A DNA stretch of 64,000 bases from Macrostomum lignano (GCA_002269645.1 NIVC01000689.1:124001-188000), one strand, 5' to 3'. Positions 15,558 to 63,400 are shown, numbered from the stretch's first letter. Translations and numbers: made by a program. The notes: generated by a model from the sequence alone, not told the origin.

Positions 15558-15589
<32 letters not shown>

Positions 15590-27269: not shown

Positions 27270-27302
<33 letters not shown>

Positions 27303-27306
27303 GCCT

Positions 27307-27340
<34 letters not shown>

Positions 27341-30300
27341 CTGTAAAGAGTGAATCTCTATGGCCAAACCAGTATTCTCTTCCACAGATGGAATGCCTTG
27401 AGAGGGGAAATGAGAGAAACCTGCATCTTCAATGCACTAATTCATGCTCAAACCACTCAATGCCCTTCTGCAGTCTAAGGCACCTCGGCTCAGTCGATGT
27501 TAAAAATGACACAATTTCGGCCAGACTGTCAGCTTTTCCGCGGCTACAAGCCTTCTGATTGGCGGCTGAGCCTTTCTCCGACTGGGTCAGCTTGAGCGGC
27601 GGAGGGCGACACGGTGACGGGTTTGATGAAGCCGAAGAGGAAGCTGCGCTGTGCCCGTTGCCAGCTTTGACTGCCGGGGAACTTTATTATTTTTTTCAGA
27701 GATTTTAGGAAAGCAAAAAGGAAATGGGAAGATTTTTAAATAGCAATTTGATTAAAAGCTCCAACCGTCTGAAATAGTTTCTTTGAGACAAAGACGCAGT
27801 CAACTAGTAATATACTTCAATAACAAAGACTACAATCACTAGCAGTGAAACAAAGACCACCATCACTAGCAGTGAAACAAAGACCACCATCACTAGCAGG
27901 GTAACAAAGACCACAATCTCTAGCAGTGAAACAAAACCACCATCAGTAGCAGTGTATTAAAGACCACTATCACTAGCAGTAAAACAAAGACCACCATTAG
28001 CAGTGAAACAAAGACCACCATCACTAGCAGTGTATCAAAGACCACTATCACTAGCAGTGAAACAAAGACCACCATCACTAGCAGTGTAACAAAGACCACC
28101 ATCACTAGCACTGAAACAAAGACCACCATTAGCAGTGAAACAAAGACCACCATCACTAGCAGTGTATCAAAGACCACTATCACTAGCAGTGAAACAAAGA
28201 CCACCATCACTAGCAGTGAAACAAAGAGTGAAACGCAGAACTGCACGAACAAAGACTCACTCGTGCGCTTTGGCAAGAGCTCTGGCGACGCGTTCTAGTC
28301 GAACCGATCGTGGCGTAGTTGGCGGAGACTCGGCCAGCTGCTGCTGTTGCAGATGCTGATGATGAGGCACAGTGGACGCCGAGCGGCCCTTGACATGAGA
28401 GAGAATGTTTCAAGCATGCAGTGCTCAGTGAAATTATAGAGTTACATATAGATTCACAAAGTAAAACTAAAAAGGATCAAAGAACTACACAATAGAATAT
28501 TACAAAGCACAACACATTAAGGCTAAAAAAGATAATTTAGCGGTACATGTACACTGTGAACAGCTGCGTGAAGTTTCTGGGTGATGAAATTCAAGGACTA
28601 CAGACCGGGAAGCTGACATGTCAAGGCTCACGAGGGTATAAATGAGATTTCAAGGCTAAAGTCAGAAGCTACATGTAGTTTATTGAAAACTTTTTATTAC
28701 ATTATTTGATGCCTCCTCAGGGGAGGGATCGCTGATAAAAAAGCGTAATGTAAAAAATAAAAGAAGCTTCATGTCGAAGTTAAGAGATTCATTTGGGAAT
28801 CCCTACGATGTCGAGGCTTGCAGGGAATCGCTATAATGCTGTAGTAGTGCTATAATGACTCTTAGAGAGAATTACTGAAATTTCAATGCTTTAGGGTTAG
28901 GTTAGGGTTAGGGTTAGGGTTAGGCTAGGGTTAGGGTTAGGCTAGGGTTAGGGTTAGAAGGTTGACAGATATTTTTAGATTTCCAAGGCTTATTGGGGGC
29001 ATTGCTGAGATGTCAAGGGGGGAAGTTGATATGTTAAAGCTTGTGGGGGGGAATTACTGACATGTCAAGGCTTACAAGGTTTGACAGGAGATTTTTTAAG
29101 ACTTCAAGGATACATGTAGCTTATTAAAAAAACGTGTATTGCATTTCTTTGGCTCCCCAACGGGGGGGGGGGTAGATTGCTAGTTTTAGCTAAAAATTTG
29201 TAATTGCTTTTGATAGCAAGCTATACTACGTACATGTCCTGTGCCTAATAATAAAAAATCACAACTCAACTCATTCAGAGTTTTAAGAATCTTTTAATCA
29301 TATTTGGCTTACTGACATTGTAACAAAATTTGCAATGATTGTATACTCCTTGAACTCAGTGTTAAGCCTTCGTTGAAGTCGAATAAAATGCTTTAGTTAT
29401 ATCCTATTAGGCTAATATAGGCCATGTTTATGAAAAAAAGCCCAGTCAATATTGGCTCATTTTTCTGAATGCTTGAATTATTGTAGTTAAAAATCATTTT
29501 TTTGTTACGCAATCAATAAGATAAGAATGATAAGTTGTGCTGTTTTTTATTAATAGAATATCAATAGAGCTTCAGGAAAGGCAAGACATATCAAAAGATG
29601 AGCATTGGGTCTAACTGCTATCAAAAGAAATGACAATTTTTGTGCCGCAAAAAAAAGAAAATCTCTAGCCTGCGTATTTTTTTTCTGAAAAATTTGCCTC
29701 CTAAAATTTCCAAGAAACCTGAATCCTGAAGGTTCTGGATTATGAGATTTCGATCTCGGTAATTGAATACCCTCGATAATTTAAAGTAGCTGTAAACCGG
29801 TGGAGTAGAAAAAAAACTTGCTAATGCTACTATTAGTAACATATATACGGCGAAAGTGACAGTATCGAGAAGTCACAAGGTAAAAAATTGACGACAATAT
29901 TCAGCAGGTTATAATATAACTAAGAACTCTACTGGGAGGCGTTCCTGATCTCTGTACCTGCCAGTGGTTCAGAAACGGCGAATCCTCGTCTGCCGACAGA
30001 TGCGGCGTAGACGAGGACAGCCGGTGACGACGGCGAGGCCGCTGCCACCGATTCACGGTGCCGGATGGGAACAGGTGCTGCTGCTGCAGCAGCAGGGGAT
30101 GTGAAACAGTTCAATGATGAATAGCAGAAGATTTTCAATCCAATCATATATGCAACAGATAATCAGAAAGTGACCGCGTGTCTGCATGCGTATCAGCGAC
30201 ATGAGCAGGCTGACATTGCTGCAGGCACACACTCACACAGGAGTGTACAGCGGCCCTAACTTTATTTATCGTTAGGCATGTACACTTCACTGTGCCTTGG

Positions 30301-33300
30301 GGGTTGGCCCTCAAGGCCGTTAATTTGCACGAGCAGAGCCAAGCCGAGATTCCAATTTAGCCACAAATTAATGCGACTGCACTTGGAATCGAGCCTGGGT
30401 CGCTGACACATCAGAGCGCCGTGCTGGACCATTGGGCTACGGCCCCCCCCCACTTTGCCCCCAGCAAACCAAACAAAATAAATCAATAATATTAAAATCC
30501 TGCATCCAGCCTTACCGAGTAGCCAGCTGGGGTGCTCCGCCCGCTAGTAGGCGGACTGCTCGGCATCTGGTGGTGCTGCTGGTATCGCTGCTGATGATGC
30601 TGTTGTTGCCATGACGACGGAGCCGCAACTACATTAGTGGAACTGCCAACTCGAGATTGTAATTCTTCGGCTCTCTGCTCGGCGGTATCTTTCTCCTCTT
30701 GGATGAGGCGAATCTCATTGTTAATGGCGTCCAGCTGCTGTTGAATAACCAGGGCCAGCGACTGAGCCTCGGAGTGCTGCGGCGCCGGCGGCGGCGGTGG
30801 TGGCGGCGGCGGAGTCGGCCGAGAGGACCCCGGAGGCGCTGGAGGATGAACCGGATCGAATGCCTGCGTCAGTAGAGAGGGAGACAGGCATTCGTCGGGG
30901 TAATTAACATAGAAGAGCTGGCTTGTAGCACATATGCGACTTGGGAGAGCTTTAGAATTGTACAACAAATAGATAAAAAATAAGTAGAAGTGCGTGCCAA
31001 AATTCCAAAACACAGCAATGTCTGGCAGGCTAGGATTTGGAAAAAAACATAGAAATAAGAGGCAGATTTACATTTAATAAATTACTAAAATATAACAAGT
31101 TCCAGGCGGGTTAGTAATGCGCGTCTTCGGGAGAACATTCAAAAGTCCGTGCTCATATTCGCACCAGAAATCTACTAACTACTGGAAATCAACTGCTAGA
31201 TAGGGAATTCACACTGTTGGAAAGGGAAATCCGACTGTGGAAAGGGAAATCCCACTGTTGGAAAGGGAAATCCGACTGTGGAAAGGGAAATCCCACTGTT
31301 GTAAAGGGAAATCCCACTGTTGAAAGGGAAATCCCACTGTTGTAAATGAAAATCCCACTATTGGAAAGGGAAATCCCACTGTTGGAAAGGGAAATACCAC
31401 TGTTGGAAAGGGAAATCCCACTGTTGGAAAGGGAAATACCACTGTTGGAAAGGGAAATCCCACTGTTGTAAATAGAAAATCCCACTATTGGAAAGGGAAA
31501 TCCCACTATTGGAAAGGAAAATCCGACTGTTGTAAATGGAAATCCCACTGTTGGAAAGGGACATCCCATTGTTGGAAAGGGAAATCCGACTGTTGTAAAT
31601 GGAAATCCCACTATTGGAAAGGGACATCCCATTGTTGGAAAGGGAAATCCGACTGTTGGAAAGGGAAATCCGACTGTTGTAAATGGAAATCCCACTGTTG
31701 GAAAGGGACATCCCATTGTTGGAAAAGGAAATCCCATTTTTGGAAAGGGAAATCTCTCTTATTGGAAATAAAAATCCCTTTGATTTTTGTCAGTGTCCCA
31801 TTATCTCGCCAAATGCTTGTCAATAAATAAATACAATAGAAGGTCATTCAGACAACATTAACAATACAGGACAGACACTTCGGACACTTCCGGACAGTGC
31901 CGGACACACACCCAATCATCCTCGGCGGAATCCGAATAAACCAAATGATTAGCGTAATACATAGGGCAGGATTGGCTAACCCGGCCTGGATTGCCAAGGG
32001 AGTTGTAGCCGTTCATAATTACTGGCGGAGGCGGGGTTGGCTGCTGCGCACTGCCGCTGTAGGCTGTGACAGCGGCGGCGGCTGCAGCGAATTCCTGCTC
32101 CCGAGCCTTTGGCGAGTGGCAGAGCGTGTGGTCGATGCAATGGCAACAAGTTATTCTACATGCAATCGATAATTAAGATAATAATTCATTTACACAAGAC
32201 AAACTGCCTGGCTTATACAGTAAAATATTGTAATGCTGTTTCAGACTATTAATAATAAACAGACACTGTTTAGCACCTGTAAACAGACACTGTTTAGCAC
32301 TTGTAAACAGACACTGTTTAGCACTTGTAAACAGACACTGTTTAGCACTTGTAAACAGACACTGTTTAGCACTTGTAAACAGACACTGTTTAGCACTAAT
32401 AGACAGGCACTGTTTAGCACTAATAAACAGACACTATTTAGCACTACTAAACAGACACTGTTGCGCATCAATAAACAGACACTGTTGCGCATCAATAAAC
32501 AGACACTGTTTAGCACTAATAAACAGACACTGTTGCGCATCAATAAACAGACACTGTTGCGCATCAATAAACAGACACTGCTTAGCACTAATAAACAGAC
32601 ACTGCTTAGCACTAATAAACAGACACTGCTTAGCACTAATAAACAGACACTGTTTAGCACTAATAAACAGACACTGCTTAGCACTAATAAACAGACACTG
32701 TTTAGCACTAATAAACAGACACTGTTTAGCACTAATAAACAGACACTGCTTAGCACTAATAAACAGACACTGCTTAGCACTAATAAACAGACACTGCTTA
32801 GCACTAATAAACAGACACTGCTTAGCACTAATAAACAGACACTGCTTAGCACTAATAAACAGACACTGCTTAGCACTAATAAACAGACACTGCTTTACAC
32901 TAATAAACAGACACTGTTTCGCATCAGTAAACAGACACTGCTTTACACTAATAAACAGACAGTGCACAGTCGTTAATAAGCAAAATCCAGGCACCTGTTG
33001 CACAGTCTGCAGCACCCGCCGCTCCTCCTGTTCGCTGGCCAGCCTGTCGGCAAGATCGGCCGCCTCCTCAGCAGCTGCTGTGGCGGCGGCCTCGGCTTCG
33101 GCGGCGGCCTCGCGCAATTGCTGAGCCTCGGCGGCCAGGCGGGCATTCTCAGCGGCCAGGCGCTCCCGCTCGGCCTCGGCCGCTTCCAGTTCGCGCCTGG
33201 CCGCCTCCAGATCCGACACGATTCGGCCGCGCTCGTCAAGCGCCGACATTCGCTCCTCAAGATGCTGCTGCAGCCGGGCGTTGCTCTCAGTGAGCAGCTG

Positions 33301-36300
33301 ATCGACCGTGGCCGACAGCCGACCCTCGTGCTCTTCGTGCAGGCGTTCGCGTTCGCGAAAGCGCGCCAACTCGGCGCGAGCTTCGGCTAGCTCGGCGCGG
33401 GCTTCGATTAATTCGGCGGCGCCGTCCTCCTCGGTCTGCTCGCGGGCCAGACGAAGCCGGGCCTCAGCGGAGCGGAGGGCGCTGTCGCGGGCGGCCGCCT
33501 GCTCCTCCAGCCGGTCGCAGCGCTCCTGAGCCGTCTCGGCGTCTCGCCTGCCGAGGATCGGGGCAGGAGGAGGGAAACGCCTTGGTTTTTTTGTGTCCGT
33601 ATGCCTTAGCGGCTGTCTTTTAGTGCCTGTCTTTTTGCTTGTCTGTCGTAGTACCCGTCTGAGTGTCAGATTTAGTGTCTGTCTTAGTGCATGTCTTGGT
33701 GTTTGTCTTAGTGTCTGTCTTAGTGCATGTCTTGGTGTTTGTCTTAGTGTCTGTCTTAGTGCATGTCTTGGTGTTTGTCTTAGTGCCTGTCTTAGTGCAT
33801 GTCTTAGTGCATGTCTAAGTGTCCGCTTTAGTGTCTGTCTTAGTGCCTGTCTTAGTGTCTGTCTTAGTGCATGTCTTGGTGTTTGTCTTAGTGTCTGTCT
33901 TAGTGTCTGTCTTAGTGCATGTCTTAGTGTCCGATTTAGTGTCTGTCTTAGTGCCTGTCTTAGTGCCTGTCTTAGTGTCTGTCTTAGTGCATGTCTTGGT
34001 GTTTGTCTTAGTGTCTGTCTTAGTGCATGTCTTAGTTCCTGTATTAGTGTCTGTCTTAGTGCATGTCTTGGTGTCTGTCTTAGTGCCTGTCTTAGTGTCG
34101 TCTTAGTGTCTGACTCTGTCTTAGTGGCTGCCTGTCTTAGTGTCTGTATTAACTTCCTACTTTGCTGTTATAGGCATCGTATACCAAAATTATGTAGATG
34201 GTACACGAGCAACTGCTTTTATCGCCAAGCAATGCAAACTTCCTGCACTTCTGTTGGAAGAGAGGAGTGGCTAACATAGGCTTCAATTCAGTTTGTTGGA
34301 CTAGCAGTTACCCCACTTACCTGGCCGTCAGACACCGCTGCTCTTGATCAGCGGCTCGAGCTTCGGCCTCGCGTCGGGCCGCCTCCGATTCCGTTGCCTC
34401 GCGCTGCAGACGCTCCGCCCGCTGCACTGCCCGGGCCGCCTCGCCTTGGGCCACCTGCAGCGCCTCCTCGGCGTCGCGCAGCCGCCTGGCTGACTCGGCA
34501 GACGCTGCCGCCGCGGCCCCGGCAGCCGCAGCCGCCGCAGTCGATGCTGCAGTTTGCTGCTGCTGCTGATCCTGCGGCTGCCGTCGATTTGTCCCAGCGC
34601 CGGTGCCATCATCGCTGGCTGACGATAAGGAGCGGAGTCTGGCCAAATCCTCATTGGCTGCGGCGAGCTCAGTCTCCGCCCGCGTGGCCCGGTCTAGTGC
34701 TTGGCGCAGCTTCTCCTTCACCTGCGATGCAATGACGGGAGGCGGGTTCTGATCCTGATACTGTCAGTCCTGATTCTGATACTGTCAGTCCCGATCCTGA
34801 CACTGTCAGTCCCGATTCTGATACTGTCAGTCCCGATCCTGACACTGTCAGTCCCGATTCTGATACTGGCAGTCCCGATTCTGATACCGTCAGTCCCGAT
34901 CCTGACACTGTCAGTCCCGATTCTGATAACTGTCAGTCCCGATCCTGACACTGTCAGTACCGATATTCTGATACTGTCAGTCCCGATCCTGATACTGTTA
35001 GTCCCAATCCTGATACTGTCAGTCCCAATCCTCCTCTACTGACGTGACTCGTTGATTTCCCTGTATGCAAATTAGTGCAAAAGCGTAAAGTGAAAACACT
35101 AGGATTTTTTAGGCCCACCTTTTCGTCAAGCGCTTTGTGATGCTCAAACAAACTCTTGAGAGCTTTGAGCACCTCCACCTCCGAGCTGACGCCGGACGGC
35201 GAGGCGGCCTGCCGTTTGACAACGGTCATTCGAAGAGACCTCTCGTGCCTAGCAACCAGTGTCTCCAGGTGTTCCAGCAGCAGCCGGGTGTTGCTGCGCT
35301 CCGCTTTCAATTCGGCAACTTCGTCGTCCCGCTCTTGCAGCTGTTCGCGCAGCTGCGTCACCTCCTTGACCAGACTGACCGAGTCCTGGGCGGCGGATGA
35401 GGGCGAGGGGGGGGGGGTTGCATTGAGGATTTTCATCCCCAATTCATTCCGGTATCCAGCCGAGTCTATGAGATTCTGAGTTTAAACTTTCTGAATAACT
35501 ATCTAAGTTTGAAGCCCAAAGATGTAAATCAGAATTCCAAATATAGTAACCTGAATTCCTAATATAGAAAGCTGAAATCCCGAATATAGAAATCTGAATC
35601 CCAAATATAGAAAGCTGAAATCCCGAATATAGAAATCTGAATCCCAAATATAGAAACCTGAAATCCCGAATATAGAAATCTGAATCCCAAATATAGAAAG
35701 CTGAAATCCCGAATATAGAAATCTGAATCCCAAATATAGAAAGCTGAAATCCCGAATATAGAAATCTGAATCCCAAATATAGAAACCTGAATCCCAAATA
35801 TAGAAAAATCGGAATCCCAAATGTAGAAAACTTGAATCCCAAATCTATATAACTAAATCTCAATAAAGAAATTTAAATCCCAAATATACAAACCGTATCC
35901 AAAATATACAAATCTGTATCCCAAATATACAAATCTGTATCCCAAAAAAAGAAATATAAATCCCAAATATAGAAATCTGCAATCCGAAGTATAGAAATAT
36001 GAGCCGTAACATAAAATTTCGAATCTTAAATTCGAAATAAATTTTTAAACCAAATGAACTACCTGAATACAAATTCCCTTTAGTGATGGCTGTATAATCT
36101 CCTTAATTCCATTCTTAAATCTGAAGATAGGTCAAGGACAATCTTTCAACAGACTTCAAAGCGAAGTAAACGCAAAAGCGCTATAAAAACGAAGACACGG
36201 TCTGTCTCTCTTTTTCCTTACTTAAGCATGCAACAGATTTTAACTAACGGGCAAAAGCTATTCCCTGTCTTCTTAGCATACTTGCTAGCTTTTCTCGAGT

Positions 36301-40959: not shown

Positions 40960-42445
40960 CTAAATTCCGTGATTGCACAGCTGGCAGACCAGCAGCAAGT
41001 CCTCCCTAGACAGTGTAATCCGACTCCTGTGCTGGCATAGCCTGTAGGCATCGCTCAAGACCTGTACAACATAGGCTTCGGCGGCCGTCTGCAGACAGCA
41101 AATCGCCAACGCTTGCCAAGTGTCGCCAACGCCCGGCGATACAACCAGCTGGCCATTGTGCTTCAAATAGGCCGTGATCTCTTTCACTAGGCGCATAAAT
41201 GGCAGCTTTCTAATTAGCAGATCAGTTGAAGATTGGAAGTAGCGAATCTGACGCTCCACGTGCTGACGCTTGCGACGATGCTGCTGCTGCGGCTGCTTGG
41301 TGTGGGGAGGGTTTCGATTGACGTAAGCTAGCGACAAAAGTGCAGAATGAACTATTGTAGTGGGATTCAACTGAACGGACTTGAGCTGCGTTAAATAGCC
41401 ATGCTTTAAACCTAAACAGTCCTTCTTTAAACAATAATAATAATAATAACAATAACTGATGACACCTTGCCTTAATGGCCAGATGTGCAACCGACAGCTC
41501 AGCCGCAGCTTTTGCGCGGCGCATCTGAAGGCTGCGTACGGCTGTTCAGTCCAAGGACTGGAGGGTCGCCACACACAGCCTCAATTACCCCAGCTAATGC
41601 TGGCACCCATTTACAGCTGGGTGAACTGAAGCAATGCAGAGTTAAGTGTCTTGCTCAAGGACACAAATTGTTCCGAGTGGGTCGAGAATCGAACCCCCGG
41701 CCTTTCAGGCGTGAGTCCGACGCTCTGACCACTAGGCTACAACCCCATCCCCTTAAACCTAAATAGTCCTCCTTTAGCCTAAACGGTCTTCGCAAACCTA
41801 GATAATTCTCTTAAAACGTATCAGGTACGTTTTAAAAAACGTAAAAGGTAAAAAAGTGTCATGAGAAGCAAAGGGCGCACGCACCTTTCTAGCAAGCTGC
41901 TGACTCTTGCTACCACTAGGCGCTGCCGCAGTTGTCGACTTCTTCGAATGAGACGCAGAAGCAGGAGGATGAGAAGGCCTCCTGGCGGCTCTGGCTGGCT
42001 CATTTTCAGCATTATCGGCAGGCGCTGCAGCCGACAGCGAGTCATCCGAATCCACATCGTTTTCACCAGCCACAGCGGCAGGAGGCTCAGGCGAGGCGGA
42101 CACGCGAGGCCTCACAACAGCAGGAGCAGCTGATCGCCTGTACGACTGACGAGCGCCGGATGAAGCGGGCGTTGCTGAAGCTTCAACCCGACGGGCTACA
42201 GGAGACGGAACAGCAGCGGCAGCAGCGGTAGCCGGCCGATTCCTAACCGCGGCGCGGCCAATTAGGGCTGCAGCAGGTGTGCTAGATAATGGCGGAGCGA
42301 ATTGAGCCGGCAGTTGGGCCGGGTCGCGGCTAGCGTTGGCTTTGTCGCCTCCGCCGCTAGTGACAACTACATTAGTTGATTTAGCGTTCAGTGGTTGCTT
42401 CTTGGTAGCTGCTGCTGCCGCTGCTTGAGACTTTTGCCGCCGCAT
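40960..42445 (-). CDS. CENPA: Centromeric histone H3 variant CenH3/CENP-A; exons 42445-41885 and ~41295-40960 (~298 aa)
   Basis: Histone fold QIRYFQSSTDLLIRKLPFMRLVKEI..TWQALAICCLQTAAEAYVVQVLSDAYRLCQHRSRITL; H3 Q68 is M, F84 is W, T107 region is AY, loop 1 is longer, and the N-tail is long and basic/Ala-Pro-rich. The exon-2 acceptor is ambiguous. Confidence 0.88.
41430..41750 (-). mobile_element. tRNA-derived CORE-type SINE in the CenH3 intron with a ~24-bp TSD
   Basis: A box TAGCCTAGTGG, B box GGTTCGATTC, core CCTTGAGCAAGACACTTAACTCTGCATTGCTTCAGTTCACCCAGCTGTAAATGG, (TTA)n tail; flanks TTAAACCTAAAYAGTCCTYCTTTA at 41406-41429 and 41753-41776. Confidence 0.88.
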
Positions 42446-45459: not shown

Positions 45460-46740
45460 GATATATATATGTAGCAACGCAGAGAGTAGCACAGAAAAAA
45501 GAGATCTAGCTAGACTTTGCGCAGACATGTTTGCAGAACAACCAAGAGGGCAAGTCATAGCGGACTGGGGGCTGAGCCCAATGGCCTGCAAGTCAGTCAG
45601 AGATGTATCATTTAATGTCATAGTTTGGCCTTGGCCACGACGCAGGCACTTAGTGGGCTAATACAGGAGAGCTAGCACCAGAGGATTTTGCTTGCCCTGG
45701 CCATGGCTTCTTAGGCAGCAGCCAAATAACATCTGACGGGGTTTACAGATAGTGCAGCTGAGCGCAGGAACACTAGTGCAAGTCATCAGGTCCCTGGTCA
45801 GAACACTATCAGGGTAGTGCATGCCCAGGGCATAGCAGAGCAGTGACCTGTAGTGGGCATCCAGGGCTTGCTGTTGCATTGCAGTCATTGGCATAGCCTC
45901 CATGCCATATAGGAGAATCAGCTCAATGGCAGTGCAAAAAAAGGCACATCTTTAGGTTGTCATGAGCTGTTGAATTGAAGATGCTCCTGAGCATGCATGC
46001 CGCATGCTAGGCCTGAGTCCTATCAGAAACAATGGTGTTGGGGCTCAAGACAAGGGAGCCAAGGTAGAGGAAATCCTTGCACACCTTGATGACTTCTCTA
46101 TTTGGAAGAGCTAGCGCAGGGGTAGTTGCAGAGGCCATGTGGAGCACCTCAGTCTTGGATGCATTGATCACCAAGCCAACTCGGGTACCCTTGTAGAGTC
46201 TAGACAGAGCCCATTGGGCAGCAGCCGGATCGTGACACAGAAGAGCAATGTTGTCAGCATAGGCTAGAGCAGGCAGCGAGATGGCAGGATGTCGGGAGCT
46301 TCAGCGTGAGACCAGCACATAGCCATCATCTTCACGCAGGCATTGGTGAAGAACATAGTCTACTACAACAATGAAGAGTAGTGGAGCCAGCATGTTGCCC
46401 TGAAGGACGCCAGAAGTTGTGCTAAATTCTTCAGTGGGGCTGTCGCTTAACTGAACAAATGCTCTTAAAATGCTGTATAAGTCTATCACAGCAGCTACAA
46501 GTTTGGAAGGAATGTCATAGTAGGACAAAATCCACAGAAGTGCAAGTCTATCAACTGAGTTGAATGCTTTGCGGAAGTCAACAAAATCAATTAAGATGGA
46601 ATGCTGATATGTCTTATAGGCTTCAATGATACAGCAGATGGTTGCAACCTGCTCAGTTGTAGACTTGCCTGGTCTGAAACCACTTTGCCAGCTGAGAAGC
46701 AGCGGATTCAGCCTAGGCAGGCGGTTGCATAGCACTGCAT
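45460..46740 (-). mobile_element. 5'-truncated, decayed RTE-clade non-LTR retrotransposon (RT domain)
   Basis: QSGFRPGKSTTEQV, FVDFRKAFNSVDR, TSGVLQGNML, LAYADNIAL, GLVINASKTE, DFLYLGS; ends near a (TA)n run. Confidence 0.9.
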
Positions 46741-47289: not shown

Positions 47290-48515
47290 TAAAGCTGTCA
47301 CGAGATCTCGATGAGACAAGATTCGAGACAAGATCTCGACATTTTTTCTTGTCTCGAGAAATCTCAAATTTTGTCAAGAAATTCAAGATGAGATTCAAGA
47401 ATTTTTCTGATACTTTTTTTCAAAAGCTTTTAAGTGATAAGATATAAAAAGGGGAGCAAATTTTCATATAAATACAACTGTTTGTTGTAACACACTTGAT
47501 AGGGCAATTTTCAAATGGTAAAATCTAGCCAATGTTGAGCAGTTATTTAACAAAAATAGCAAAGAATTTAAACTAGAATTAAGAAAGTATTCTGGAAAAT
47601 CTAAAAAATATATTTTAGAATTGTATCTTATCAAGAAATTTAAGACAAGATAAAGCAAGATAAGAGCAAGACAAAATGCATTTCTGAAATATATTTTTTA
47701 GATTTACTTTGTCTTGTCTCGTCTCGAAATTCTCGACTTATAAGCCTTTCTCGTCTCGAATAAAATCTCGGCAGTGCTTATCCCCACGGTACCGTAGGAA
47801 TAATTTCTGTCTTATTCCAACGGTACCGTGCGAATAATTTTCTGCTTATCCGCACGGCACACTGAGGAGATAGCTGCCCTATCTTCTACATATGCCGTGC
47901 GAATAATTTTCTGCTTATCCGCACGGCACACTGACGAGATAGCTGCCCTATCTTCTACATATGCCGTGCGAATAATTTTCTGCTTATCCGCACGGCACAC
48001 TGACGAGATAGCTGCCCCATCTTCTACATATGCCGTGTTGTGGGAAGTTTAGTCAAGGACGACTTAAGTCGTCCTTGAGTTTAGTACATACGATTTGAGT
48101 GCAGTATAACAACATAACTTGGCTTGAACATTTGTTCTAAAGAAATAAAGATTTTTTCTATGAGAAAGAATTTTTTTGTGTAGTAACAAATGATTTAAAT
48201 TAAATTAACTCTAAGAATTGTTTATTATTTAAATTTTTTGCAAAGTCTAATCTGATCTCGCCGTGATTTATATAGTCCATTGCCGCTTCCGTAGAATTTT
48301 ACTACTCATGTGAATTCGCATGATTCATATTCATATTGCGGACAAGCAGAAAATTATTCGCACGGCATATGTAGAAGATGGGCAGCTATCTCGTCAGTGT
48401 GCCGTGCGGATAAGCAGAAAATTATTCGCACGGTACCGTTGGAATAAGACAGAAATTATTCCTACGGTACCGTGGGGATAAGCAGTGCCTAAAATCTCTA
48501 ATTTTGACAGCTCTA
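47290..48515. mobile_element. hAT-type MITE with GTCTCG/CGAGAC subterminal motifs
   Basis: TIRs TAAAGCTGTCA / TGACAGCTCTA; perfect 8-bp TSD TCAATTTC (47282-47289 and 48516-48523). Confidence 0.88.
47778..48481. mobile_element. Foldback element nested in the hAT MITE, with 69-bp subterminal repeats (3 left, ~1.4 right)
   Basis: Long TIRs TTATCCCCACGGTACCGTAGG..; GCAGTGC duplicated on both sides (TSD 3, 5 or 7 bp depending on where the ends are placed). Confidence 0.85.
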
Positions 48516-48951
48516 TCAATTTCCACAAAAACATGCCACAAATGAAAAGGCCTATGTTCTTCGGACTTAAAAAATAATTTGCCAACCGAATCTTTCTGTT
48601 CCAGATCACAAGCAATTTTGACTGAAATAAGCTTTATTGTCACCGCTGTACTGGTTATAATTTCGAGGTATATATGTGAGGGTTCCCCGACAGATATTCG
48701 CGACAGATATTTTCTCCTTCAAACGGATAATTCAAACAAAAAATGAATTTATGTTTCGGGATGCATTACTTACTCTGACGCCGTATTCAGCTTTAAAATT
48801 TTGTAGACAAAAATTTTATGTCTTAAAGAAAAAAATATTAGTACGAATACAAAGTGTGTCAAAACGAATTTTATCACACATTCCTTACAAAAAAATTCTC
48901 ACGCCAAAGAACTTATGAAGTAACGGTAGCAATGAATTTTTTGTCAGTTTC

Positions 48952-49785
48952 TGACGCATGTCTCAACTTTGCAATGACACCTTAGACACATGTCCTACTT
49001 TTGTATTTCCTGGGATATCTGCTTCCAAAGTGTGCTTTCCGTGAGTCATTCATCATCCGTACCAAGACCAACCAAAACTTTGACTTATCGCTCCGTCTCT
49101 ATGCTTCAATCATTTGCTCTGAAACTTCTACCACTTCTTGACGCATGTCTCAGCTTTGCAGTGACACCTTAGACACATGTCCTACTTTTGTATTTCCCGG
49201 GATATCTGCTTCCAAAGTGTGCTTTCCGTGAGTCATTCATCATCCGTACCAAGACCAACCAAAACTTTGACTTATCGCTCCGTCTCTATGCTTCAATCAT
49301 TTGCTCTGAAACTTCTGCCACTTCTTGACGCATGTCTCAGCTTTGCAGTGACACCTTAGACACATGTCCTACTTTTGTATTTCCCGGGATATCTGCTTCC
49401 AAAGTGTGCTTTCCGTGAGTCATTCATCATCCGTACCAAGACCAACCAAAACTTTGACTTATCGCTCCGTCTCTATGCTTCAATCATTTGCTCTGAAACT
49501 TCTACCACTTCTTGACGCATGTCTCAGCTTTGCAGTGACACCTTAGACACATGTCCTACTTTTGTATTTCCCGGGATATCTGCTTCCAAAGTGTGCTTTC
49601 CGTGAGTCATTCATCATCCGTACCAAGACCAACCAAAACTTTGACTTATCGCTCCGTCTCTATGCTTCAATCATTTGCTCTGAAACTTCTACCACTTCTT
49701 GACGCATGTCTCAGCTTTGCAGTGACACCTTAGACACATGTCTGACTTTTGTATTTCCCGGGATATCTGCTTCCAAATTGTGCGT
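48952..49785 (+). repeat. 187-bp tandem repeat, left arm (4 full copies plus a partial)
   Basis: ORF starts at 48990, 49177, 49364 and 49551. Confidence 0.95.
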
Positions 49786-50446
49786 TCCGTGGGTTATGTC
49801 TATATATCTCTCGCTGCGTCTTTTGCTCAAGCATACTACGAGACACGCGATCAAACACATGATTGGTTTGCGTATTTCTCGAGATATTTTTTGAGCTCTT
49901 TGGTTTCAAAATGACACCTTTAGATAGAGTCAGCTAGCTTTTGTGTTATTCCTGAACAATGTCTGTTTCTTGGCGAATCTGGTGGCGAAAAGTATATTGT
50001 CGACATAAGTTTTTTGTAAAGTATTACAAGCAGTTTCTCGAAACAAAAAACAATAACTCATTAAGAACAACTGTATTTGTGTAAATGTCTTGTACTATGT
50101 ATAGATTATTGCAGTTACTAACGTAGTTGAGGGGAAAGAACAAATGGTCGTATGAATAAAGTGAGTAGTTGCTCAAACTCGGCGAGATTCTCAAATCAGT
50201 ATGAATAAAATGAGTGCGTCCTCCTGAGCAAGTGCTCAAAATCAATTTCCCAAGAGTTACATGTAGTGCTCTCCCCGTGAGCAAATGCTCGGTGACTGAG
50301 TAGAGACTCGCTTCAGTATGAATAAACTCTGGTCATAAACAATTGCAATTTGTCTTGAGATCTTGCTCAGCAAAAGTTGAGTCTCCTCTGTAGTAGACTC
50401 ACTGGTTGAGCAGCATCCAGCCATGTCCCTAAGCGGCAAATAGCGT

Positions 50447-51868
50447 CTATGTCCCTACGCTATTGAACTCAAATTTATAGGCAACCCATAGGCTTTTTCG
50501 CACAAGTAACGAAAACCAGCGGTCGCACTTTACCTGTTACCGCCATACAAAAGTGGCCTATCTAGGGAATATAAGATCTATGATTCATATGAACATTGAG
50601 CAACTGCTCCAGATCAGAGCAGTTGCTCGAGTTCGAGCTTTTGCTCAATCTCAGAGTTTGAGGTGAAACTCGCCAGTTATTGCTCACTGTAGTCATACGG
50701 CCAAAATAAAGCTAGGAAATTTTAGGAAATGTAACTTTCGTATAAACAAACATAACCGTCAGCTGTCTAAATTAATGCATGTGACACACACCTTGTTGTT
50801 CTGGTCTTGTTGTCGAGTCCAGCAAGATTTGTGAAACCAGAAGAGGCACGATGGGCACTCGATCTGCAGATTTTATGCGGTATAGCTATGCCTCATACGC
50901 TCGTATATACTTACATGAATTACCTTAGTGCGTCCAAAAAGTTCTTAGACACCCCTCCTATCTCTGCACATGTTCAATCGATTTTTATAAAAATTGACAA
51001 AAACATGTACCTATATGTAATGAATTCAGTGCTAAAGTTTCAGCTTAATCGGGTTGACATATAGCAAAAGAAATTGATCATTTCTAAGGTACACTAAGGT
51101 GTTAATTTTCAACGTAACTTACCCACTCAATTGTACTCGTAGAACGATTTCGACCCCGCGGCCGGGGTTCTTCTAAATGGCAACCGTGGCATGTGTTTTG
51201 CTCTGATTTTTCGTCAAAATTGGTTATTGCTGTCTTTATAATGCCTCGAGCAACGGACAGCTTTGGCTGCACATTAGGTATAATAGTGCACCTACCAAGC
51301 AATAAATTTCTTCCAAAGAGCGAAACAAAAACGCCGCAGGAGTCGGAGTCTATTTGCTGCGTGCAAATCCGATGGGAAACTGCGAAGCATTCCCTCTGGG
51401 AGTTTTCAATGAGTGGGCCAAGACATTCGTCGACATCTGACAATAGGAGTAGCGCGCTGAAACCGTAAAACGAATTTTATAGATGCAGAGATTTGCATAA
51501 GGTGTAATAAAATAATTTTAGGCTTGGTACATTCCTTACTTCCACTTTCTTGCTATTTCCTCCACTTCATTCTTTCTTCTTCCGCCAGTGCGCCTCATCG
51601 AGTCCAGTGAGTAGATTTTTTTCTCATCAAGAAAGATTGCTACGAGCCAAAAATGGCTCGGCGACAACATTGGAATCAGAATTTTTGTTATTTTCTAATT
51701 GTTGGATAGTGGTAAGAACAAAATGGATTGTATCGTTTCTTTAATAATTAATATACGAGTAATTTGTATTTGCAATTGTACTTACGCTTCTTCCTGTCGC
51801 GTAGTTCTGCAAGGCTTCTTTTGTCGGAAGCAGAAGATTGTTTGGGTTGTCAATTGTTCTGACTGAAA
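50447..51868 (-). CDS. Spliced Ulp1/SENP (C48) cysteine protease plus PHD finger, 5'-truncated; exons 51868-51786, 51694-51540, 51456-51123, 50863-50792, ~50533-50447
   Basis: KILIPMLSPSHFWLVAIFLDEKKIYSLDSM (His, Asp), TQQIDSDSCGVFV (Gln, Cys), CHGC..IEW|IECPSCLFWFHKSC; GT-AG junctions are phase-compatible; last exon uncertain. Confidence 0.8.
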
Positions 51869-51885
51869 CTGCAAAGTGCATAGAA

Positions 51886-52905
51886 AGCACACTTTGGAAG
51901 CAGATATCCCGGGAAATGCAAAAGTCAGACATGTGTCTAAGGTGTCACTGCAAAGCTGAGACATGCGTCAAGAAGTGGTAGAAGTTTCAGAGCAAATGAT
52001 TGAAGCATAGAGACGGAGCGATAAGTCAAAGTTTTGGTTGGTCTTGATACGAATGATGAATGACTCACGGAAAGCACACTTTGGAAGCAGATATCCCGGG
52101 AAATACAAAAGTAGGACATGTGTCTAAGGTGTCACTGCAAAGCTGAGACATGCGTCAAGAAGTGGTAGAAGTTTCAGAGCAAATGATTGAAGCATAGAGA
52201 CGGAGCGATAAGTCAAAGTTTTGGTTGGTCTTGGTACGGATGATGAATGACTCACGGAAAGCACACTCTGGAAGCAGACATCCCGGGAAACACAAAAGCA
52301 GGACATGCGTCCAAGGTGTCACTGCAAAGCTGAGACATGCGTCAAGAAGTGGTAGAAGTTTCAGAGCAAATGATTGAAGCATAGAGACGGAGCGATAAGT
52401 CAAAGTTTTGGTTGGTCTTGGTACGGATGATGAATGACTCACGGAAAGCACACTTTGGAAGCAGATATCCCGGGAAATACAAAAGTAGGACATGTGTCTA
52501 AGGTGTCACTGCAAAGCTGAGACATGCGTCAAGAAGTGGTAGAAGTTTCAGAGCAAATGATTGAAGCATAGAGACGGAGCGATAAGTCAAAGTTTTGGTT
52601 GGTCTTGGTACGGATGATGAATGACTCACGGAAAGCACACTTTGGAAGCAGATATCCCGGGAAATACAAAAGTAGGACATGTGTCTAAGGTGTCACTGCA
52701 AAGCTGAGACATGCGTCAAGAAGTGGTAGAAGTTTCAGAGCAAATGATTGAAGCATAGAGACGGAGCGATAAGTCAAAGTTTTGGTTGGTCTTGGTACGG
52801 ATGATGAATGACTCACGGAAAGCACACTTTGGAAGCAGATATCCCGGGAAATACAAAAGTAGGACATGTGTCTAAGGTGTCACTGCAAAGCTGAGACATG
52901 CGTCA
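51886..52905 (-). repeat. 187-bp tandem repeat, right arm (5 full copies plus a partial), inverted relative to the left arm
   Basis: ORF starts at 52119, 52306, 52493, 52680 and 52867. Confidence 0.95.
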
Positions 52906-53938
52906 GAAACTGACAAAAAAATTCATTGCTACCGTTACTTCATAAGTTCTTTGGCGTGAGAATTTTTTTGTAAGGAATGTGTGATAAAATTCGTTTTGAC
53001 ACACTTTGTATTCGTACTAATATTTTTTTCTTTAAGACATAAAATTTTTGTCTACAAAATTTTAAAGCTGAATACGGCGTCAGAGTAAGTAATGCATCCC
53101 GAAACATAAATTCATTTTTTGTTTGAATTATCCGTTTGAAGGAGAAAATATCTGTCGCGAATATCTGTCGGGGAACCCTCACATGAGGTATATTAGGTAA
53201 ATGGCAATGTGAAGCATTGTTAAATCAACGGGTAATACATCGTTAACACGTGTTTTTTTGTATAAGCATACTTCTAGATGCATTGTTTTGTTTTAAGCTT
53301 TTCAAAGAAACTGAAATATCTTAAATTCTTTTGTTCAACCATAAACGAAACTACTTATATGCCTCTTGTTTTACTTCCTTTCATGCGCGCTATTATAAAA
53401 AATCTTTCGCGAAAATGTCGTCACTTGTAGCAAAAACAGTAAATTACTTATTAATACTTCAAATTATCAAATTATCCATCCAATTAAGTCAAACTTCGTG
53501 TGATCACGAACAACTTTTATATCAATTTTGATTTCTTTTTAAATTTTTACATTCATTGTATTGTAAGGATTTTAATTTCTAATATTATAGAATTTTTATT
53601 AAAGAATTTAATTTCTAATATTATCTAATATAATATTTAGATTTTTAGATTTTAATTTGGACATTTGTACATTTTATATGGTTTAATTCTATAAAACAAT
53701 TTTTAATTAAAAATGAAATCAAAAGATTTTTTTGTATATTATAAAATAAAGTAGGCCTATTTTAGTATTTAATCTAATAATTATATAATATAAACTAGGC
53801 CTAGGCCCTAGCTATCATTGTCTTAACATCAAGAAGGCCTGGGTATAGCCTTTGAAATTTAAATAACTTTAGCCAATTGGTTCTTACTGATGCCAAATCA
53901 ATGCTAAAATGAACTATAATTAATATACTCATACTTAG

Positions 53939-56622: not shown

Positions 56623-57906
56623 ATGTCCTCCACCGGTGTTCTGTTTGCGCCACCCAACTATTTTCGCGCCCAGCGCGTTGAAATTGCTGCCGCCTACTCT
56701 GGCTTTAAACTGACCAAGGCCAAGTATGAGCCAGGCAAAACCGATAGCACCCTGGTCAAGAAGGGCTTCCCAGCTGGCTGCCTGCCAGCTTTCGAGTCTG
56801 GCAAGGAACAACTATTCGAAGCCAACGCCATTGCCCAGTTTGTTGCCAACGAGCAACTGCGAGGCGGCTCTGGCAATTCGGCCAACGTTGCCCAGTTCGC
56901 CAACTGGAGCGACGCCACCTTCGTGCCGCCCATGACCGCCTGGGTGCTGCCCTGCCTTGGTGTTACCAGGCCCGACGCTGGCCAGATCGAGGCCGCCAAG
57001 GCCCAGGTAGCAGCCGGTTTGAAGTTTCTGGACTCTTATCTGGCCACTCGAACCTACCTGGTTGGCGAGCGAATCACCCTCGCTGATGTGGCTGTAGCCT
57101 GCGATCTGTTGCCGCTGTTCCAGCACGCCATGGGCCCGGAGCAGCGCCGGCCATACGCCAACGTCTCTCGCTGGTTTAACACCCTGGTTAACCAGCCGGA
57201 ATTCAAGCGAATCCTAGGCGAGGTGAAGCTGGCCGATAAAGCTGGCGAATTCAGCCAGGCTCGCTACGATCAGCTGCGGCAACAGTCGGGCGGCAAGAAA
57301 GACGACAAGAAGCAGGCTAAGAAGGAAGAGCCGAAGAAGAAGGAAGCGGCGCCTAAGAAGGAGGAGCCAAAGAAGGAGGCTACAGCTACCGCTGCCGACG
57401 AGAGTGAGAAGAAGAAGGAGGATAAAGATCCTTTTGCCAAGCTCCCAGTCGGCACCTTCAACATGGACGAGTTCAAGCGCGTGTACTCCAACCAGGACAT
57501 TAAGACCGTTGCCATACCATACTTCTGGCAGAACTTCGATCCCGAGCACTACAGTCTGTGGTACTGCGAATATCTCTATCCGGAAGACCTGCGCCTCCTA
57601 TTCATGTCCAGCAATCTGATTGGCGGCATGTTCCAGCGCCTGGAAAGGATGCACAAGCACGCGTTCGGTTCCATGGTTGTGTTTGGCGAGAATAACAAGA
57701 GCACAATTAGTGGTCTCTGGTTCTGGCGCGGCCAGGGTCTGGCTTTTGAGCTTAGCGAAGATCTACAGGTGGATTATGAGAGCTACTCGTGGCGCAAGCT
57801 GGATCCTAAATCCGATGAGGCTAAGAAATTGGTTGAGGCCTACTTCCTGCATGATGAGGGCGACTTCGGTGACAAGAAGTTTGCTAGGGGCAAGATCTTC
57901 AAATAA
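56623..57906 (+). CDS. EEF1G: Elongation factor 1-gamma (eEF1B-gamma), coding region intronless
   Basis: GST-N and GST-C domains, K/E-rich linker, and C-terminal EF1G domain (KDPFAKLP..FNMDEFKRVYSN..FMSSNLIGGMFQRLE..VDYESYSWRKLD); ATG follows a cattgcag| acceptor, so the ORF-track TTG start at 56614 is intronic. Confidence 0.97.
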   Translation: MSSTGVLFAPPNYFRAQRVEIAAAYSGFKLTKAKYEPGKTDSTLVKKGFPAGCLPAFESGKEQLFEANAIAQFVANEQLRGGSGNSANVAQFANWSDATFVPPMTAWVLPCLGVTRPDAGQIEAAKAQVAAGLKFLDSYLATRTYLVGERITLADVAVACDLLPLFQHAMGPEQRRPYANVSRWFNTLVNQPEFKRILGEVKLADKAGEFSQARYDQLRQQSGGKKDDKKQAKKEEPKKKEAAPKKEEPKKEATATAADESEKKKEDKDPFAKLPVGTFNMDEFKRVYSNQDIKTVAIPYFWQNFDPEHYSLWYCEYLYPEDLRLLFMSSNLIGGMFQRLERMHKHAFGSMVVFGENNKSTISGLWFWRGQGLAFELSEDLQVDYESYSWRKLDPKSDEAKKLVEAYFLHDEGDFGDKKFARGKIFK

Positions 57907-60445: not shown

Positions 60446-63400
60446 GTAAGTGAAGGGGTTTCTGAGGACGTAAATTTTTGCGTGTTTTTCAACAGAAATG
60501 ATATTGGATTTTTAAAAATGCAATGAAGTCAATTGACCTAGTTTCCTACATACAAGTAACTAGTTGAAGTTGAAGCCTCAGAATGAGATTGAGTTGTTAG
60601 AAAGTCTTGAAATGTAGCTAGCTACAAATTGTTCATTAGGCACATTGTTTAATTGCGCTATAAAGTACATTTAAGTTTAAGGGATAAAGACAACATATTA
60701 ATAATATATTCATGCGTTTGAAGTTTGTGAAAAGGACCTCTAATCGAGTAAGGACACTAGAAGGACATGTAAACATATAGACGCGTGTTCTAATAATCAG
60801 AGAAGTTATAACTGACAAAGGACCAGAAGGCAGACATCCATAGCGGCACTACGGACACGACGACAGAGTAAACCAACAAAGGACACCGACAGACGCGGAC
60901 AACGAATTAAAAAATAGGGAGGGAGTAGCGATCAAGGTCAATGAATACAATGGTACAAGTACATAGGCACGCACTTATACGATTATAGTAGTGTCTCGAT
61001 ATGGAGTGACATTTATAGAGTGACTTTTTCGACATTGCTGGGATCACGAAGCAGGCACGAAAATTAGATTATTTCGATACAGTAGTTGATAATTTGTAGT
61101 GTCTTTTTAGAAGCATTCAGACCTCTTGTTTCCTTCAGCTCGTACTAGCTCCAATTTACCTTGTTGTAACTGTTATTTAGTATATATAATGTGGATTGTT
61201 TATGACTTATGAGACCAGACGATAGTGATGACTTATGAGACCAGACGACACGAAAGGAAATTCAATTAAAACTTGCGCTTTGTATTTAGCTTGTGAGATG
61301 GTGCCTTTTCTCCAATAGGCATGTTGGCGGTAGGCTCCTGCAGCATCATCAGATAATGCTACTTCAGAAGGCGTGCGTAAGTCAACCGTCAATCCACCCG
61401 CACAGGCTTATGTAGCAACTAGCAAGTTAGCGGCAAGTCATCTGGTGCTTCTCTAGCTCACAGGTTAAGGGCGTGAATTTGAGGATTTTCCCGGCTCGAG
61501 CAAGGTGGCATTGCGATATCCTATTGCGTTTCAAAATCCCCGTCGAGCTGTGAGATTTGCGATCCGATTGGCATCTCTAATTTCTGGATTTCTGTTTTTC
61601 TCCTCCGTTATTGATTGAATCTCCCGATGCAAAGAAAGAGTGAGGAAATAAATTTGTCGCAGTCGGTGACGCTACTCCCTTTGTAACGGCGAGACGAATC
61701 TGTTTTCAATAGCCGCGCGCACGGTGCCAACTGGCGTCGGAATATAATTCCCTCCATCAAGAGGCTGACGTGCCTGCATCTATTAGAGCCCGGCTGAAAT
61801 CCAAGCCAAGCCAAGAGCGAGGAAGTCAGTCAGGAGCAGGAGATCATTTGCGGAAGCAGCGAGGAATCAGGAAGTTGGAAAATGTTCGGCGCAAAGCTTT
61901 AGTTAGTCAGTCGCCTCCCATTCCTCCTGTGCAGCTCCTATTCTTCATCATTCTCTCCTAGCATCTGTCAAGGCGGCTTTTGGTTGTTTTTAAATTCCAC
62001 GCGAGTGTGTGGAGAGAGACCAATAAGGAAAACAAGAGCCAGGGAATGAATTTGATATTTATAAGATCCTCATTGCGCGCGTTTGTCTCTCGGGCGGATG
62101 TTTTCGGCCTCTGTTGCGCATGTCAGGAAGGAGAGACGACAAACGCGACTATCAGATATCTGCAAAATTTGGATTGCTTTGAATTAATAAGAAGAAGCCA
62201 AATAATTTTCAGGAACCAACAGTGACATTCAGTTTTACTGAGGAAATTTTCGTGAATTTTTGCAAAGAACAACATTCACGAGGCCAGTAAATATAGGCAG
62301 TACTATTTTTACCATATTTTGTCTAATCTATAGGCATCTTTAATGCCCTTCGTATCAGCCGCAAGATAAGAATTTTTCGCGCGTTCAATTCCATTTTTCC
62401 CCACGTCTGACTGAGGATTGCGGCGGAGTGAAAAAAACCAGTTGTAAAACTGCTTGCCCGCCAGGCGGGGAAGCGCATTGCTTCCCTGAAGGAAAGCAAG
62501 TCTATTTGCGCACGGCTGAGCTAAAGCAAATTTAAGTCGTGACTCGCCATTCCTTTCCAATTCCTTGCTGCTACGCTATCCCCTGCCGGCCGAAGCCGTT
62601 AATTCTTAATCCAAGTCCTACACGACGCGTTGGCTGGTTGTCGGTCTCTAAGACACAGGGAGGGAGGCCCAGCAGAGCCAGCAGCAGTAGCGGCAGCACA
62701 AACACTGGGCTGGGCTTCGATGCGTGGCCAGACCAGCCAAGCGGCTAAGTCAAATAACAAGTGTTCCGATCTGAAAGCCGGCAAATAACTGCATCTCCTA
62801 CCAATGCAGATAAGCTATTGCTTGCTTAGCACCGCGTCGGCCGAGAGTCTTACGAGTAATTGCAGTTCGTTGTTAGCTTTACTACTAGCTCGTAGAATAA
62901 CAACTTGCAAGCGACGCTTGAAGCAACGCCTCTGGTGGGCGAAATTTTTGGATTGTACATTCAAGTATTTGTACAATAATTTCCGGATGTCATGCAGCTA
63001 ATTATTTCTGGTTTTTTAATAGTGCCTTTAGCAGCTTCTGTGTTTACCAGCACATTGTCTAAGGTACATCACTGGTTGGAAAAGTGAAGCGGGAATGCGC
63101 TCTCAGTTTCCATATCTTATCCTGGATACTTTACTCATCCTGCTGTCTCGATCAGCTTCACTTCCCCTCTCGGCCTGTTTGCTCAGGCAGACAGGACTGC
63201 ATGGCTACTCGGCAGAATGCGCTGTGCGCGCGAATTCCGAACAAACACGGTCTACACAATACAGCTTCATGCAGCTGCTGAGTTGGAGCGCGCATTCGTT
63301 CGACATAGACCTTTTTTGCGAAGAATTTCTCTAAAATAAAATGCAATTTAATTTCCATCTCTGTCCAAAAAGCAATTTGTATTTAAAGCGCTTCTTACTC

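Follow-up and report, generated by a model that had tools for sequence, protein, structure and literature searches.

A young foldback transposon with 187-bp tandem repeats in its inverted ends, most likely of the Rehavkus branch, in the flatworm Macrostomum lignano

In the present study, a 64-kb stretch of contig NIVC01000689.1 of the flatworm Macrostomum lignano (GCA_002269645.1, assembly Mlig_3_7) was analysed; this whole stretch is referred to as the window, and coordinates are positions within it unless another contig is named. We describe a 4511-bp element at 48674-53184, delimited by sequence reading and repeat analysis, which is quite probably a young, internally deleted, non-autonomous cut-and-paste foldback transposon of the MULE superfamily (taken here as Mutator plus Rehavkus), most likely of the Rehavkus branch. 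Three lines of evidence carry this conclusion. First, the element is a recent insertion into one of two duplicated copies of its region, and the second copy preserves the empty site. Second, its inverted ends are of kilobase length, nearly identical and built largely of tandem repeats. Third, its interior holds a gene remnant whose relative in a cyprinid fish lies directly after a Rehavkus-type transposase gene. An initial annotation of the window had proposed a young, non-autonomous foldback element of the Mutator superfamily with satellite-bearing terminal inverted repeats (TIRs); the core of that proposal is upheld by the target site duplication (TSD), the empty site, the likeness of the arms and the lack of an open reading frame (ORF) for a DDE transposase.

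The insertion, its empty site and its tandem-repeat ends

A perfect 9-bp TSD, GAGGTATAT, abuts both ends of the element (9 of 9 positions match; chance of such a flank match, p ~4e-6), and the tips read ATGTGAGGGTTCCCCGACAG... on the left and ...CTGTCGGGGAACCCTCACAT on the right. The inverted arms measure 1124 bp on the left and 1302 bp on the right. Their outermost 269 nt are 100% complementary, further arm pairs match at 97-98%, and over ~1 kb of aligned arm there are about 10 substitutions and one 1-nt indel, located in a T-run of the terminal domain (~99% identity). In each arm, a unique terminal domain (278 bp on the left, 279 bp on the right) precedes 187-bp units arrayed head to tail, for which Tandem Repeats Finder (TRF) reported 4.5 copies at 48952-49791 (98% matches) and 5.5 copies at 51883-52905 (97% matches). 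Of the nine full units, five match the consensus exactly. In both arms, the partial unit that lies innermost carries GTCTGACTTT in place of the GTCCTACTTT found in every other unit; the arms thus mirror each other over their full length and differ by one unit. On the right, the array starts without transition at unit position 88, at a distance of 188 bp upstream of exon A of the gene remnant described below; the left array fades more gradually. The perfect TSD, the near-identical arms, the terminus of ~280 bp with its array (counted as 4.4 and 5.4 copies) and the shared innermost variant had all been put forward in the initial annotation, and all were reproduced. The features of the element are as follows.

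48665-48673, no strand: left TSD copy GAGGTATAT; a single copy stands at the empty site in NIVC01000202.1 (6551-6559)
48674-48951, plus strand: left unique terminal domain, 278 bp, with tip ATGTGAGGGTTCCCC and two direct GACAGATATT motifs; 269 nt are 100% complementary to 52916-53184
48952-49797, plus strand: left 187-bp array, four full units and a 98-nt innermost partial unit (GTCTGACTTT), by TRF and unit listing
49823-50686, no strand: unique sub-terminal stretch downstream (3') of the gene remnant; TTGCTCA/TGAGCAA cluster by motif count
50759-50863, minus strand: exon C, second half of the PHD finger (IECPSCLFWFHKSC...CVTC) and TGA stop, with an AG acceptor before ATCGAGTGC
51123-51456, minus strand: exon B, Gln/Cys box of the C48 protease (TQQIDSDSCGVFV), then the first Cys pair of the PHD finger; open for 124 codons, with AG acceptor and GTAAGT donor
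51540-51694, minus strand: exon A, His and Asp boxes of the C48 protease (SPSHFWLVAIF...YSLDS), by Pfam Peptidase_C48 match
51695-51882, minus strand: interval with the presumed internal-deletion breakpoint, from the missing upstream exons (C48 positions 1-84 and the transposase) and the arm comparison
51883-52905, minus strand: right 187-bp array, five full units and an 88-nt innermost partial unit (GTCTGACTTT), by TRF and unit listing
52158-52344, minus strand: unit R4 of the right array, a variant that has a cluster of six T>C changes (plus strand) at 52268-52312
52906-53184, minus strand: right unique terminal domain, 279 bp, by inverted-repeat and arm comparison
53185-53193, no strand: right TSD copy GAGGTATAT, by repeat analysis and empty-site comparison

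The empty site was found through a neighbouring gene. The element lies upstream of an intronless EF1-gamma ORF (56623-57906), whose exact product occurs on two contigs of GCA_002269645.1. One of these, NIVC01000689.1, is the window itself (100% identity), and the other, NIVC01000202.1, is a second copy of the region with flanks 98.7-99.3% identical. The whole-genome shotgun accession NIVC00000000 is the Mlig_3_7 assembly, in which 180 Mb lie in duplicated blocks of at least 95% identity owing to the DV1 karyotype (PMC5730564). On NIVC01000202.1 the element is absent and the sequence reads ...GGTTATAATTTTGAGGTATATTAGGTAAATGG..., with one GAGGTATAT only. Thus, the boundaries are fixed and the 9-bp target duplication is proven, and the pair of filled and empty sites places the insertion after the ~1% divergence of the two region copies. 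Staggered-cut insertion with a 9-bp duplication is demonstrated, as are the near-identical kilobase inverted ends with unequal numbers of units and the loss of the transposase-coding part.

The arms make up 2426 of the 4511 bp (54%) of an element without a DDE ORF, as in non-autonomous elements of the foldback type. Behind each tip, the two direct motifs of the terminal domain occupy positions 15-37. Every 187-bp unit holds CAGATAT in reverse orientation, although a 7-mer match is weak evidence for extra binding sites in the units. Derivation of the 187-bp unit from the terminal domain, in the manner of Tetris elements, was considered and rejected (local alignment score 12, against a shuffled mean of 12.3). 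Further copies of the tip, the unit or the interior were not found within the window, and inside the element there was no tRNA and no Rfam family above threshold.

Several additional observations concern the element and its immediate surroundings. The changes in unit R4 distinguish it from all other units; all six are of a single type (A>G on the unit strand), are packed within 45 bp, and five of them lie in a WA context. A single type of change would not be expected from a diverged donor unit or from polishing error; the cluster may mark a patch of error-prone repair or the footprint of a deaminase, and to connect either with hairpin formation would be more speculative. In the unique sub-terminal region, 8 of the 19 matches to TTGCTCA/TGAGCAA in the window, counted in both orientations, fall within 864 bp, where ~0.26 are expected. 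Several of these matches sit in short palindromes, e.g. GAGCAACTGCTC, and may represent candidate protein-binding sites.

A second, unrelated TIR element of 720 bp (47770-48489) lies 184 bp upstream of the 4.5-kb element. It is flanked by a perfect 9-bp TSD, TAAAATCTC (47761-47769 and 48490-48498), and its ends, which read GGCA[G/C]TGCTTATCCCCACGG..., are inverted and near-perfect over ~110 bp, with 34-bp subrepeats and a 69-bp unit present three times in the left arm and once in the right. This element is likewise missing from NIVC01000202.1, where one TAAAATCTC stands. The occurrence of two independent young insertions with 9-bp TSDs less than 1 kb apart suggests recent MULE-type activity or a local hotspot. 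In addition, a 462-bp segment at 60496-60957 in the gene of a G protein-coupled receptor (rhodopsin-type, aminergic-like), immediately behind its first coding exon, has no counterpart in NIVC01000202.1; its junction shows ACA microhomology only, with no TIR and no clear TSD.

A Ulp1-PHD gene remnant and its relatives

A six-frame scan and Pfam searches revealed fragments of a Ulp1/SENP (C48) protease and of a PHD finger on the minus strand of the interior. These fragments form three exons, A (51540-51694), B (51123-51456) and C (50762-50863 plus the stop), separated by introns with AG acceptors and GTAAGG/GTAAGT donors. When spliced, they give the C-terminal 197 amino acids of a protein that reads inward from the right end of the element and terminates with its own stop codon, followed by a trailer of ~1 kb. 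The spliced peptide matches Pfam Peptidase_C48 with 25.1 bits (gathering threshold 20.7; E 1.8e-5) over profile positions 85-179, and positions 1-84, together with everything upstream, are missing. The PHD part has the arrangement C-X2-C...C-X2-C-X4-H-X2-C...C-X2-C with the core WIECPSCLFWFH, and shows the canonical pattern, C-X2-C...WIECPSCLFWFHKSC...C-X2-C. Pfam PHD gave a weak match to the window peptide alone. A profile of the peptide and the two homologues described below matched SENP5, SENP1 and SENP2 in the PDB at E 5e-7 to ~1e-4, and the same three-sequence profile matched the PHD finger of KDM5B at E 3.7e-8. The simplest reading is that the interior is the remnant of the element's own gene, whose 5' part was lost by internal deletion.

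The transposase itself was sought with a hidden Markov model (HMM) of Rehavkus, constructed from the six Repbase DDE domains in the supplementary alignment of Dupeyron et al. 2019 (PMC6446971) after realignment and searched against ORFs of at least 80 amino acids in the window and in every retrieved locus. None of the window ORFs of this length matched, and the element copy is therefore non-autonomous. The initial annotation is thus borne out as to the absence of a transposase, but the interior, which it had taken as non-coding, contains the three-exon remnant.

Only two homologues of the tail were found. When exon B was searched exhaustively with phmmer against 1.84 billion representative proteins, one real match emerged (P0002), a fragment on two 1.2-kb Logan contigs; a further match (P0001) was discarded as a spurious repeat protein. 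The three exons and the intron positions of the remnant are repeated on these contigs by tblastx, with 37% identity in exon B and 80% in exon C over a 15-amino-acid segment of the PHD core (QIECPSCLFWFHKSC), and the contigs are too short to reveal a transposase. A two-sequence profile search then added an uncharacterised 139-amino-acid protein of the cyprinid Garra rufa (P0003; Pfam PHD E 3.7e-7), to which the flatworm tail is related by BLASTP (5e-8) and hhalign (probability 97.8%). When all three sequences are aligned, the His, Asp and Cys of the C48 protease, its oxyanion-hole Gln and all eight zinc ligands of the PHD finger are invariant, and an intron after '...DW' is shared by all three loci (flatworm, Logan and Garra rufa). 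Other searches yielded no relatives: the concatenated tail had no matches in a word-indexed protein search; exact-product look-ups with the element ORFs of 113, 80, 60, 44 and 63 amino acids gave no second M. lignano copy; and scans of metagenomes with tail peptides, and of metagenomes and GTDB with the terminal sequence, gave zero relatives, as expected for collections that are mostly prokaryotic.

The Garra rufa locus (GCA_049309525.1, JBLIWC010000027.1, 6719-12612) links the tail to a transposase. Here, the C48 N-terminal exons start at ~9144, where a 767-amino-acid ORF on the same strand (6878-9181) stops. This ORF was recognised neither by Pfam, including its MULE models, nor by PDB sequence searches, and it was the sole match of the Rehavkus HMM, which it covers completely (model positions 1-305; 137.9 bits; E 2.9e-38 at a nominal Z = 1e6). 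The alignment contains the motifs LHLDATGSVV, VETDYSWALI, LHLCSSHILK and NCHVEEWF. Since the fish tail directly adjoins the DDE ORF, there is at least one genome in which the tail family and a Rehavkus-type transposase are physically linked. Several exons immediately after the DDE ORF encode the whole Ulp1 protease together with a PHD finger, although the annotation of the locus holds the 139-amino-acid uncharacterised protein only. This vertebrate locus also falls outside the host range of Rehavkus as given in 2019. On the same contig, a separate insertion at 14295-20048 has inverted terminal segments of 100% identity, a 1095-codon ORF and an overlapping 768-amino-acid ORF; by eye, these ORFs resemble a reverse transcriptase with RNase H and a tyrosine recombinase, suggesting a DIRS-like retroelement.

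Family placement and alternative explanations

Membership of the M. lignano element in the MULE superfamily in the broad sense is very probable; for the Rehavkus branch specifically our confidence is more modest, and this branch is favoured. The element combines a 9-bp TSD, long TIRs with variable numbers of subterminal tandem repeats and a PHD finger; the published account of Rehavkus elements gives a TSD of 9 bp, TIRs 26-412 bp long, minisatellites and a PHD finger (PMC6446971). The 9-bp TSD and the C-terminal position of the PHD finger are shared with Rehavkus-1_TC and Rehavkus-3_TC of Tribolium castaneum and Rehavkus-1_HR of Helobdella, and a homologous tail is found in a gene that has a Rehavkus-type DDE domain. 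The ends of Rehavkus-1_TC carry a 164-bp unit, mostly in 5 and 8 copies per end, and repeats related to Rehavkus arrays have expanded into an 80-kb satellite. The present copy differs in having no transposase, which leaves its clade membership indirect, in its flatworm host, as opposed to the insects and one annelid reviewed in 2019 (PMC6446971), and in ends without sequence similarity to any known family compared.

Tetris of Drosophila virilis, with its TIR-220 satellite, has a similar anatomy of a unique outer domain, an array of ~200-bp units and an inner domain; its TSDs are 8-10 bp, only non-autonomous copies of it are known, and it was assigned to Mutator from TSD length (PMC4079207). 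In contrast to the M. lignano element with its three exons, Tetris has no coding remnant; its repeats share 37 bp with the outer domain, whereas the similarity of unit and terminus here is no better than shuffled, and expansion into free satellite has been shown for Tetris. The initial annotation had drawn a parallel with the TIR expansion of Foldback, Galileo and Phantom, but the closest described kin are instead Rehavkus and Tetris, which have the same anatomy. Drosophila FB elements have a 9-bp TSD, as does the present element, and their ends consist almost wholly of short (10-31 bp) repeats, unlike the 278-bp unique terminus and long 187-bp unit seen here. Long inverted ends rich in tandem repeats, hairpin potential and the usual assignment to Mutator are further features in common with FB (PMC4079207).

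Several points weigh against a Rehavkus assignment. With no transposase in this copy and no second M. lignano copy recovered, the partner is reached by a two-step chain, from the flatworm tail to the fish tail and from there to the adjacent fish DDE ORF. Tails with Ulp1, or with Ulp1 plus PHD, are also known from Ginger1 and, in Hydra and the lancelet, from canonical Mutator transposases (PMC2836005), and the tail alone therefore does not discriminate. The accessible published descriptions of Rehavkus name a PHD finger and make no mention of the Ulp1 domain that precedes it here. The 187-bp unit, a putative binding target of the transposase, has no significant similarity to the terminal domain. 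Finally, TIRs with tandem repeats were not seen within 22 kb flanking the Garra rufa locus, which is thus uninformative on TIR anatomy; this locus may be an old or domesticated copy.

The alternative that survives best, although we regard it as unlikely, is a canonical Mutator lineage of the MuDR, Phantom or FB-NOF type, with the same structure and mechanism and a partner transposase of a different clade. The element agrees with Mutator sensu stricto (MuDR/Phantom) in its TSD (8-11 bp, typically 9 bp, in that group) and in its TIRs, which are often long there; indeed, a 9-bp TSD and long TIRs are common to many MULEs, and MULE groups such as Curupira and MuDR_SM exist in Platyhelminthes (PMC6446971, Table 1 for the TSDs and TIRs). 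Most foldback elements have been assigned to Mutator (PMC4079207), and the Hydra and lancelet transposases carry Ulp1 and PHD together (PMC2836005). However, the only tail homologue linked to a transposase adjoins a Rehavkus-type DDE ORF that the Pfam MULE models do not recognise, and subterminal tandem arrays with a C-terminal PHD finger are the published signature of Rehavkus.

It is rather improbable that the exons are a captured fragment of a host gene, as in Pack-MULEs, with no descent from an autonomous copy encoding Ulp1-PHD. Acquisition of host gene fragments by MULEs is known (PMC6446971), and the remnant comprises the 3' part of a gene only, with introns. On the other hand, it runs inward from the right array with a stop and a trailer of ~1 kb, which fits a terminally retained 3' end, and there are documented transposon genes that combine 1-4 introns with a Ulp1/PHD tail (PMC2836005). 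Moreover, no host-like full-length homologue was found among the 1.8 billion representative proteins, and the related tail in the fish directly adjoins a transposase ORF.

Another superfamily with foldback ends or a Ulp1-PHD tail, i.e. Galileo-like P, hAT, Merlin or Ginger1, is highly improbable as the source. TSDs are 7-8 bp in P/Galileo and 8 bp in hAT elements, and Galileo has a P-type THAP transposase and 7-bp TSDs; the TSD of exactly 9 bp established by the empty-site comparison contradicts such an origin, and no THAP or P domain was observed among the interior ORFs scanned. Foldback structure does arise convergently, and Galileo of Drosophila buzzatii, a P element, has kilobase TIRs with internal tandem repeats that add transposase-binding sites (PMC4079207); given its superfamily, Galileo is a convergent parallel only and serves as a mechanistic analogy. 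Ginger1 elements, e.g. Ginger1-9_HM, have a transposase gene with introns and C-terminal Ulp1 and PHD domains, and Ginger ends read TGTNR, to be compared with TGTGA at bases 2-6 of the present element, but Ginger1 differs in its 4-bp CCGG/CCGT TSDs, TIRs of 40-270 bp and integrase-like DDE domain (PMC2836005). A Ginger1 end beginning at TGTGA was tried and rejected, as a boundary there leaves no flanking duplication.

An assembly artefact, such as an inverted duplication or a palindromic long-read chimera, might be imagined here, as Mlig_3_7 was assembled from long reads, is known to be redundant and represents a genome very rich in repeats (PMC5730564), but its probability is negligible and the empty homologous site rules it out: an artefact would not duplicate precisely 9 bp that occur only once at the homologous site, nor yield arms with unequal unit numbers and private substitutions, nor a 2.1-kb unique interior with a spliceable gene remnant.

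Proposed mechanism, neighbouring sequences and implications

Herein, we propose the following origin for an element of the Rehavkus branch. The parent element would have encoded a Rehavkus-type DDE transposase fused to, or followed by, the Ulp1-PHD tail. The 5' part of the gene, together with part of the innermost right unit, may have been lost in an internal deletion, e.g. through abortive gap repair after excision. Transposase would then be supplied in trans, as a DDE-Ulp1-PHD protein, by a full-length copy located elsewhere. This protein would bind the terminal domain, which carries the two direct GACAGATATT motifs, and possibly the 187-bp units as additional sites. Judging from Galileo and from the work of Liu and Wessler, a higher number of repeats may make excision more frequent. 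The arrays could change their copy number by unequal exchange or slippage, as the 4.5 and 5.5 units might reflect, and the complementarity of the arms would allow them to form a hairpin. As put forward in the initial annotation, such a hairpin might give rise to small RNAs, and the arrays might seed a 187-bp satellite.

Other features of the window were also noted. An ORF with a histone H3 fold at 40963-41574 on the minus strand (Pfam Histone E 3.6e-21) has an extended loop by eye, and a possible N-terminal exon at 41798-42445 (minus strand) would, if joined, add a long Ala/Pro/Ser-rich tail; the copy on NIVC01000202.1 was called as a 297-amino-acid histone-domain protein, and the ORF looks like a candidate for centromeric H3 (CENP-A). 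Exons of a liprin-alpha-like gene extend over 16800-35500 on the minus strand, with SAM domains at 16816-17412 and the LIP-1 coiled coil at 32437-33369. Among these exons lie very large minisatellites, presumably intronic, of which the largest spans 6.5 kb (18900-25446; 28-bp unit, 233 copies), in addition to more than 10 other arrays with units of 12-49 bp. There is also an interstitial telomere-type TTAGGG run of ~11 copies at 28891-28957. A reverse transcriptase fragment of a decayed retroelement (Pfam RVT_1, E 1e-11) lies at 46304-46735 on the minus strand, 2 kb upstream of the two DNA-transposon insertions.

The known working of foldback transposons is unchanged by this element, and its architecture has already been described in beetles and flies; what is added to the initial annotation is the species, the empty site, the gene remnant and the finer family placement. 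It provides a fully bounded foldback example, with filled and empty sites in one assembly and a satellite-sized repeat in its ends, and it was by the route of tandem-repeat inverted ends that Tetris and the Tribolium Rehavkus seeded real satellites. The results also suggest that Rehavkus-type elements occur in Platyhelminthes and in a teleost, and that a Rehavkus transposase gene can carry a SUMO-protease domain before the PHD finger. More tentatively, we raise the possibility of a currently or very recently active Rehavkus lineage in a flatworm, beyond the insect and annelid range, whose transposase gene would carry a tail of SENP-type SUMO protease and PHD finger, kept between flatworm and cyprinid to the position of one intron. 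If this were true, a native cut-and-paste system would be alive in M. lignano; it would make the duplicated chromosomes differ in the presence or absence of insertions and would carry ready-made seeds of a 187-bp satellite. M. lignano serves as a model for transgenesis and has duplicated chromosomes; for such a species, a native DNA transposon that was mobile recently is of interest as a source of insertional polymorphism, as a marker that separates duplicated regions and possibly as a tool.

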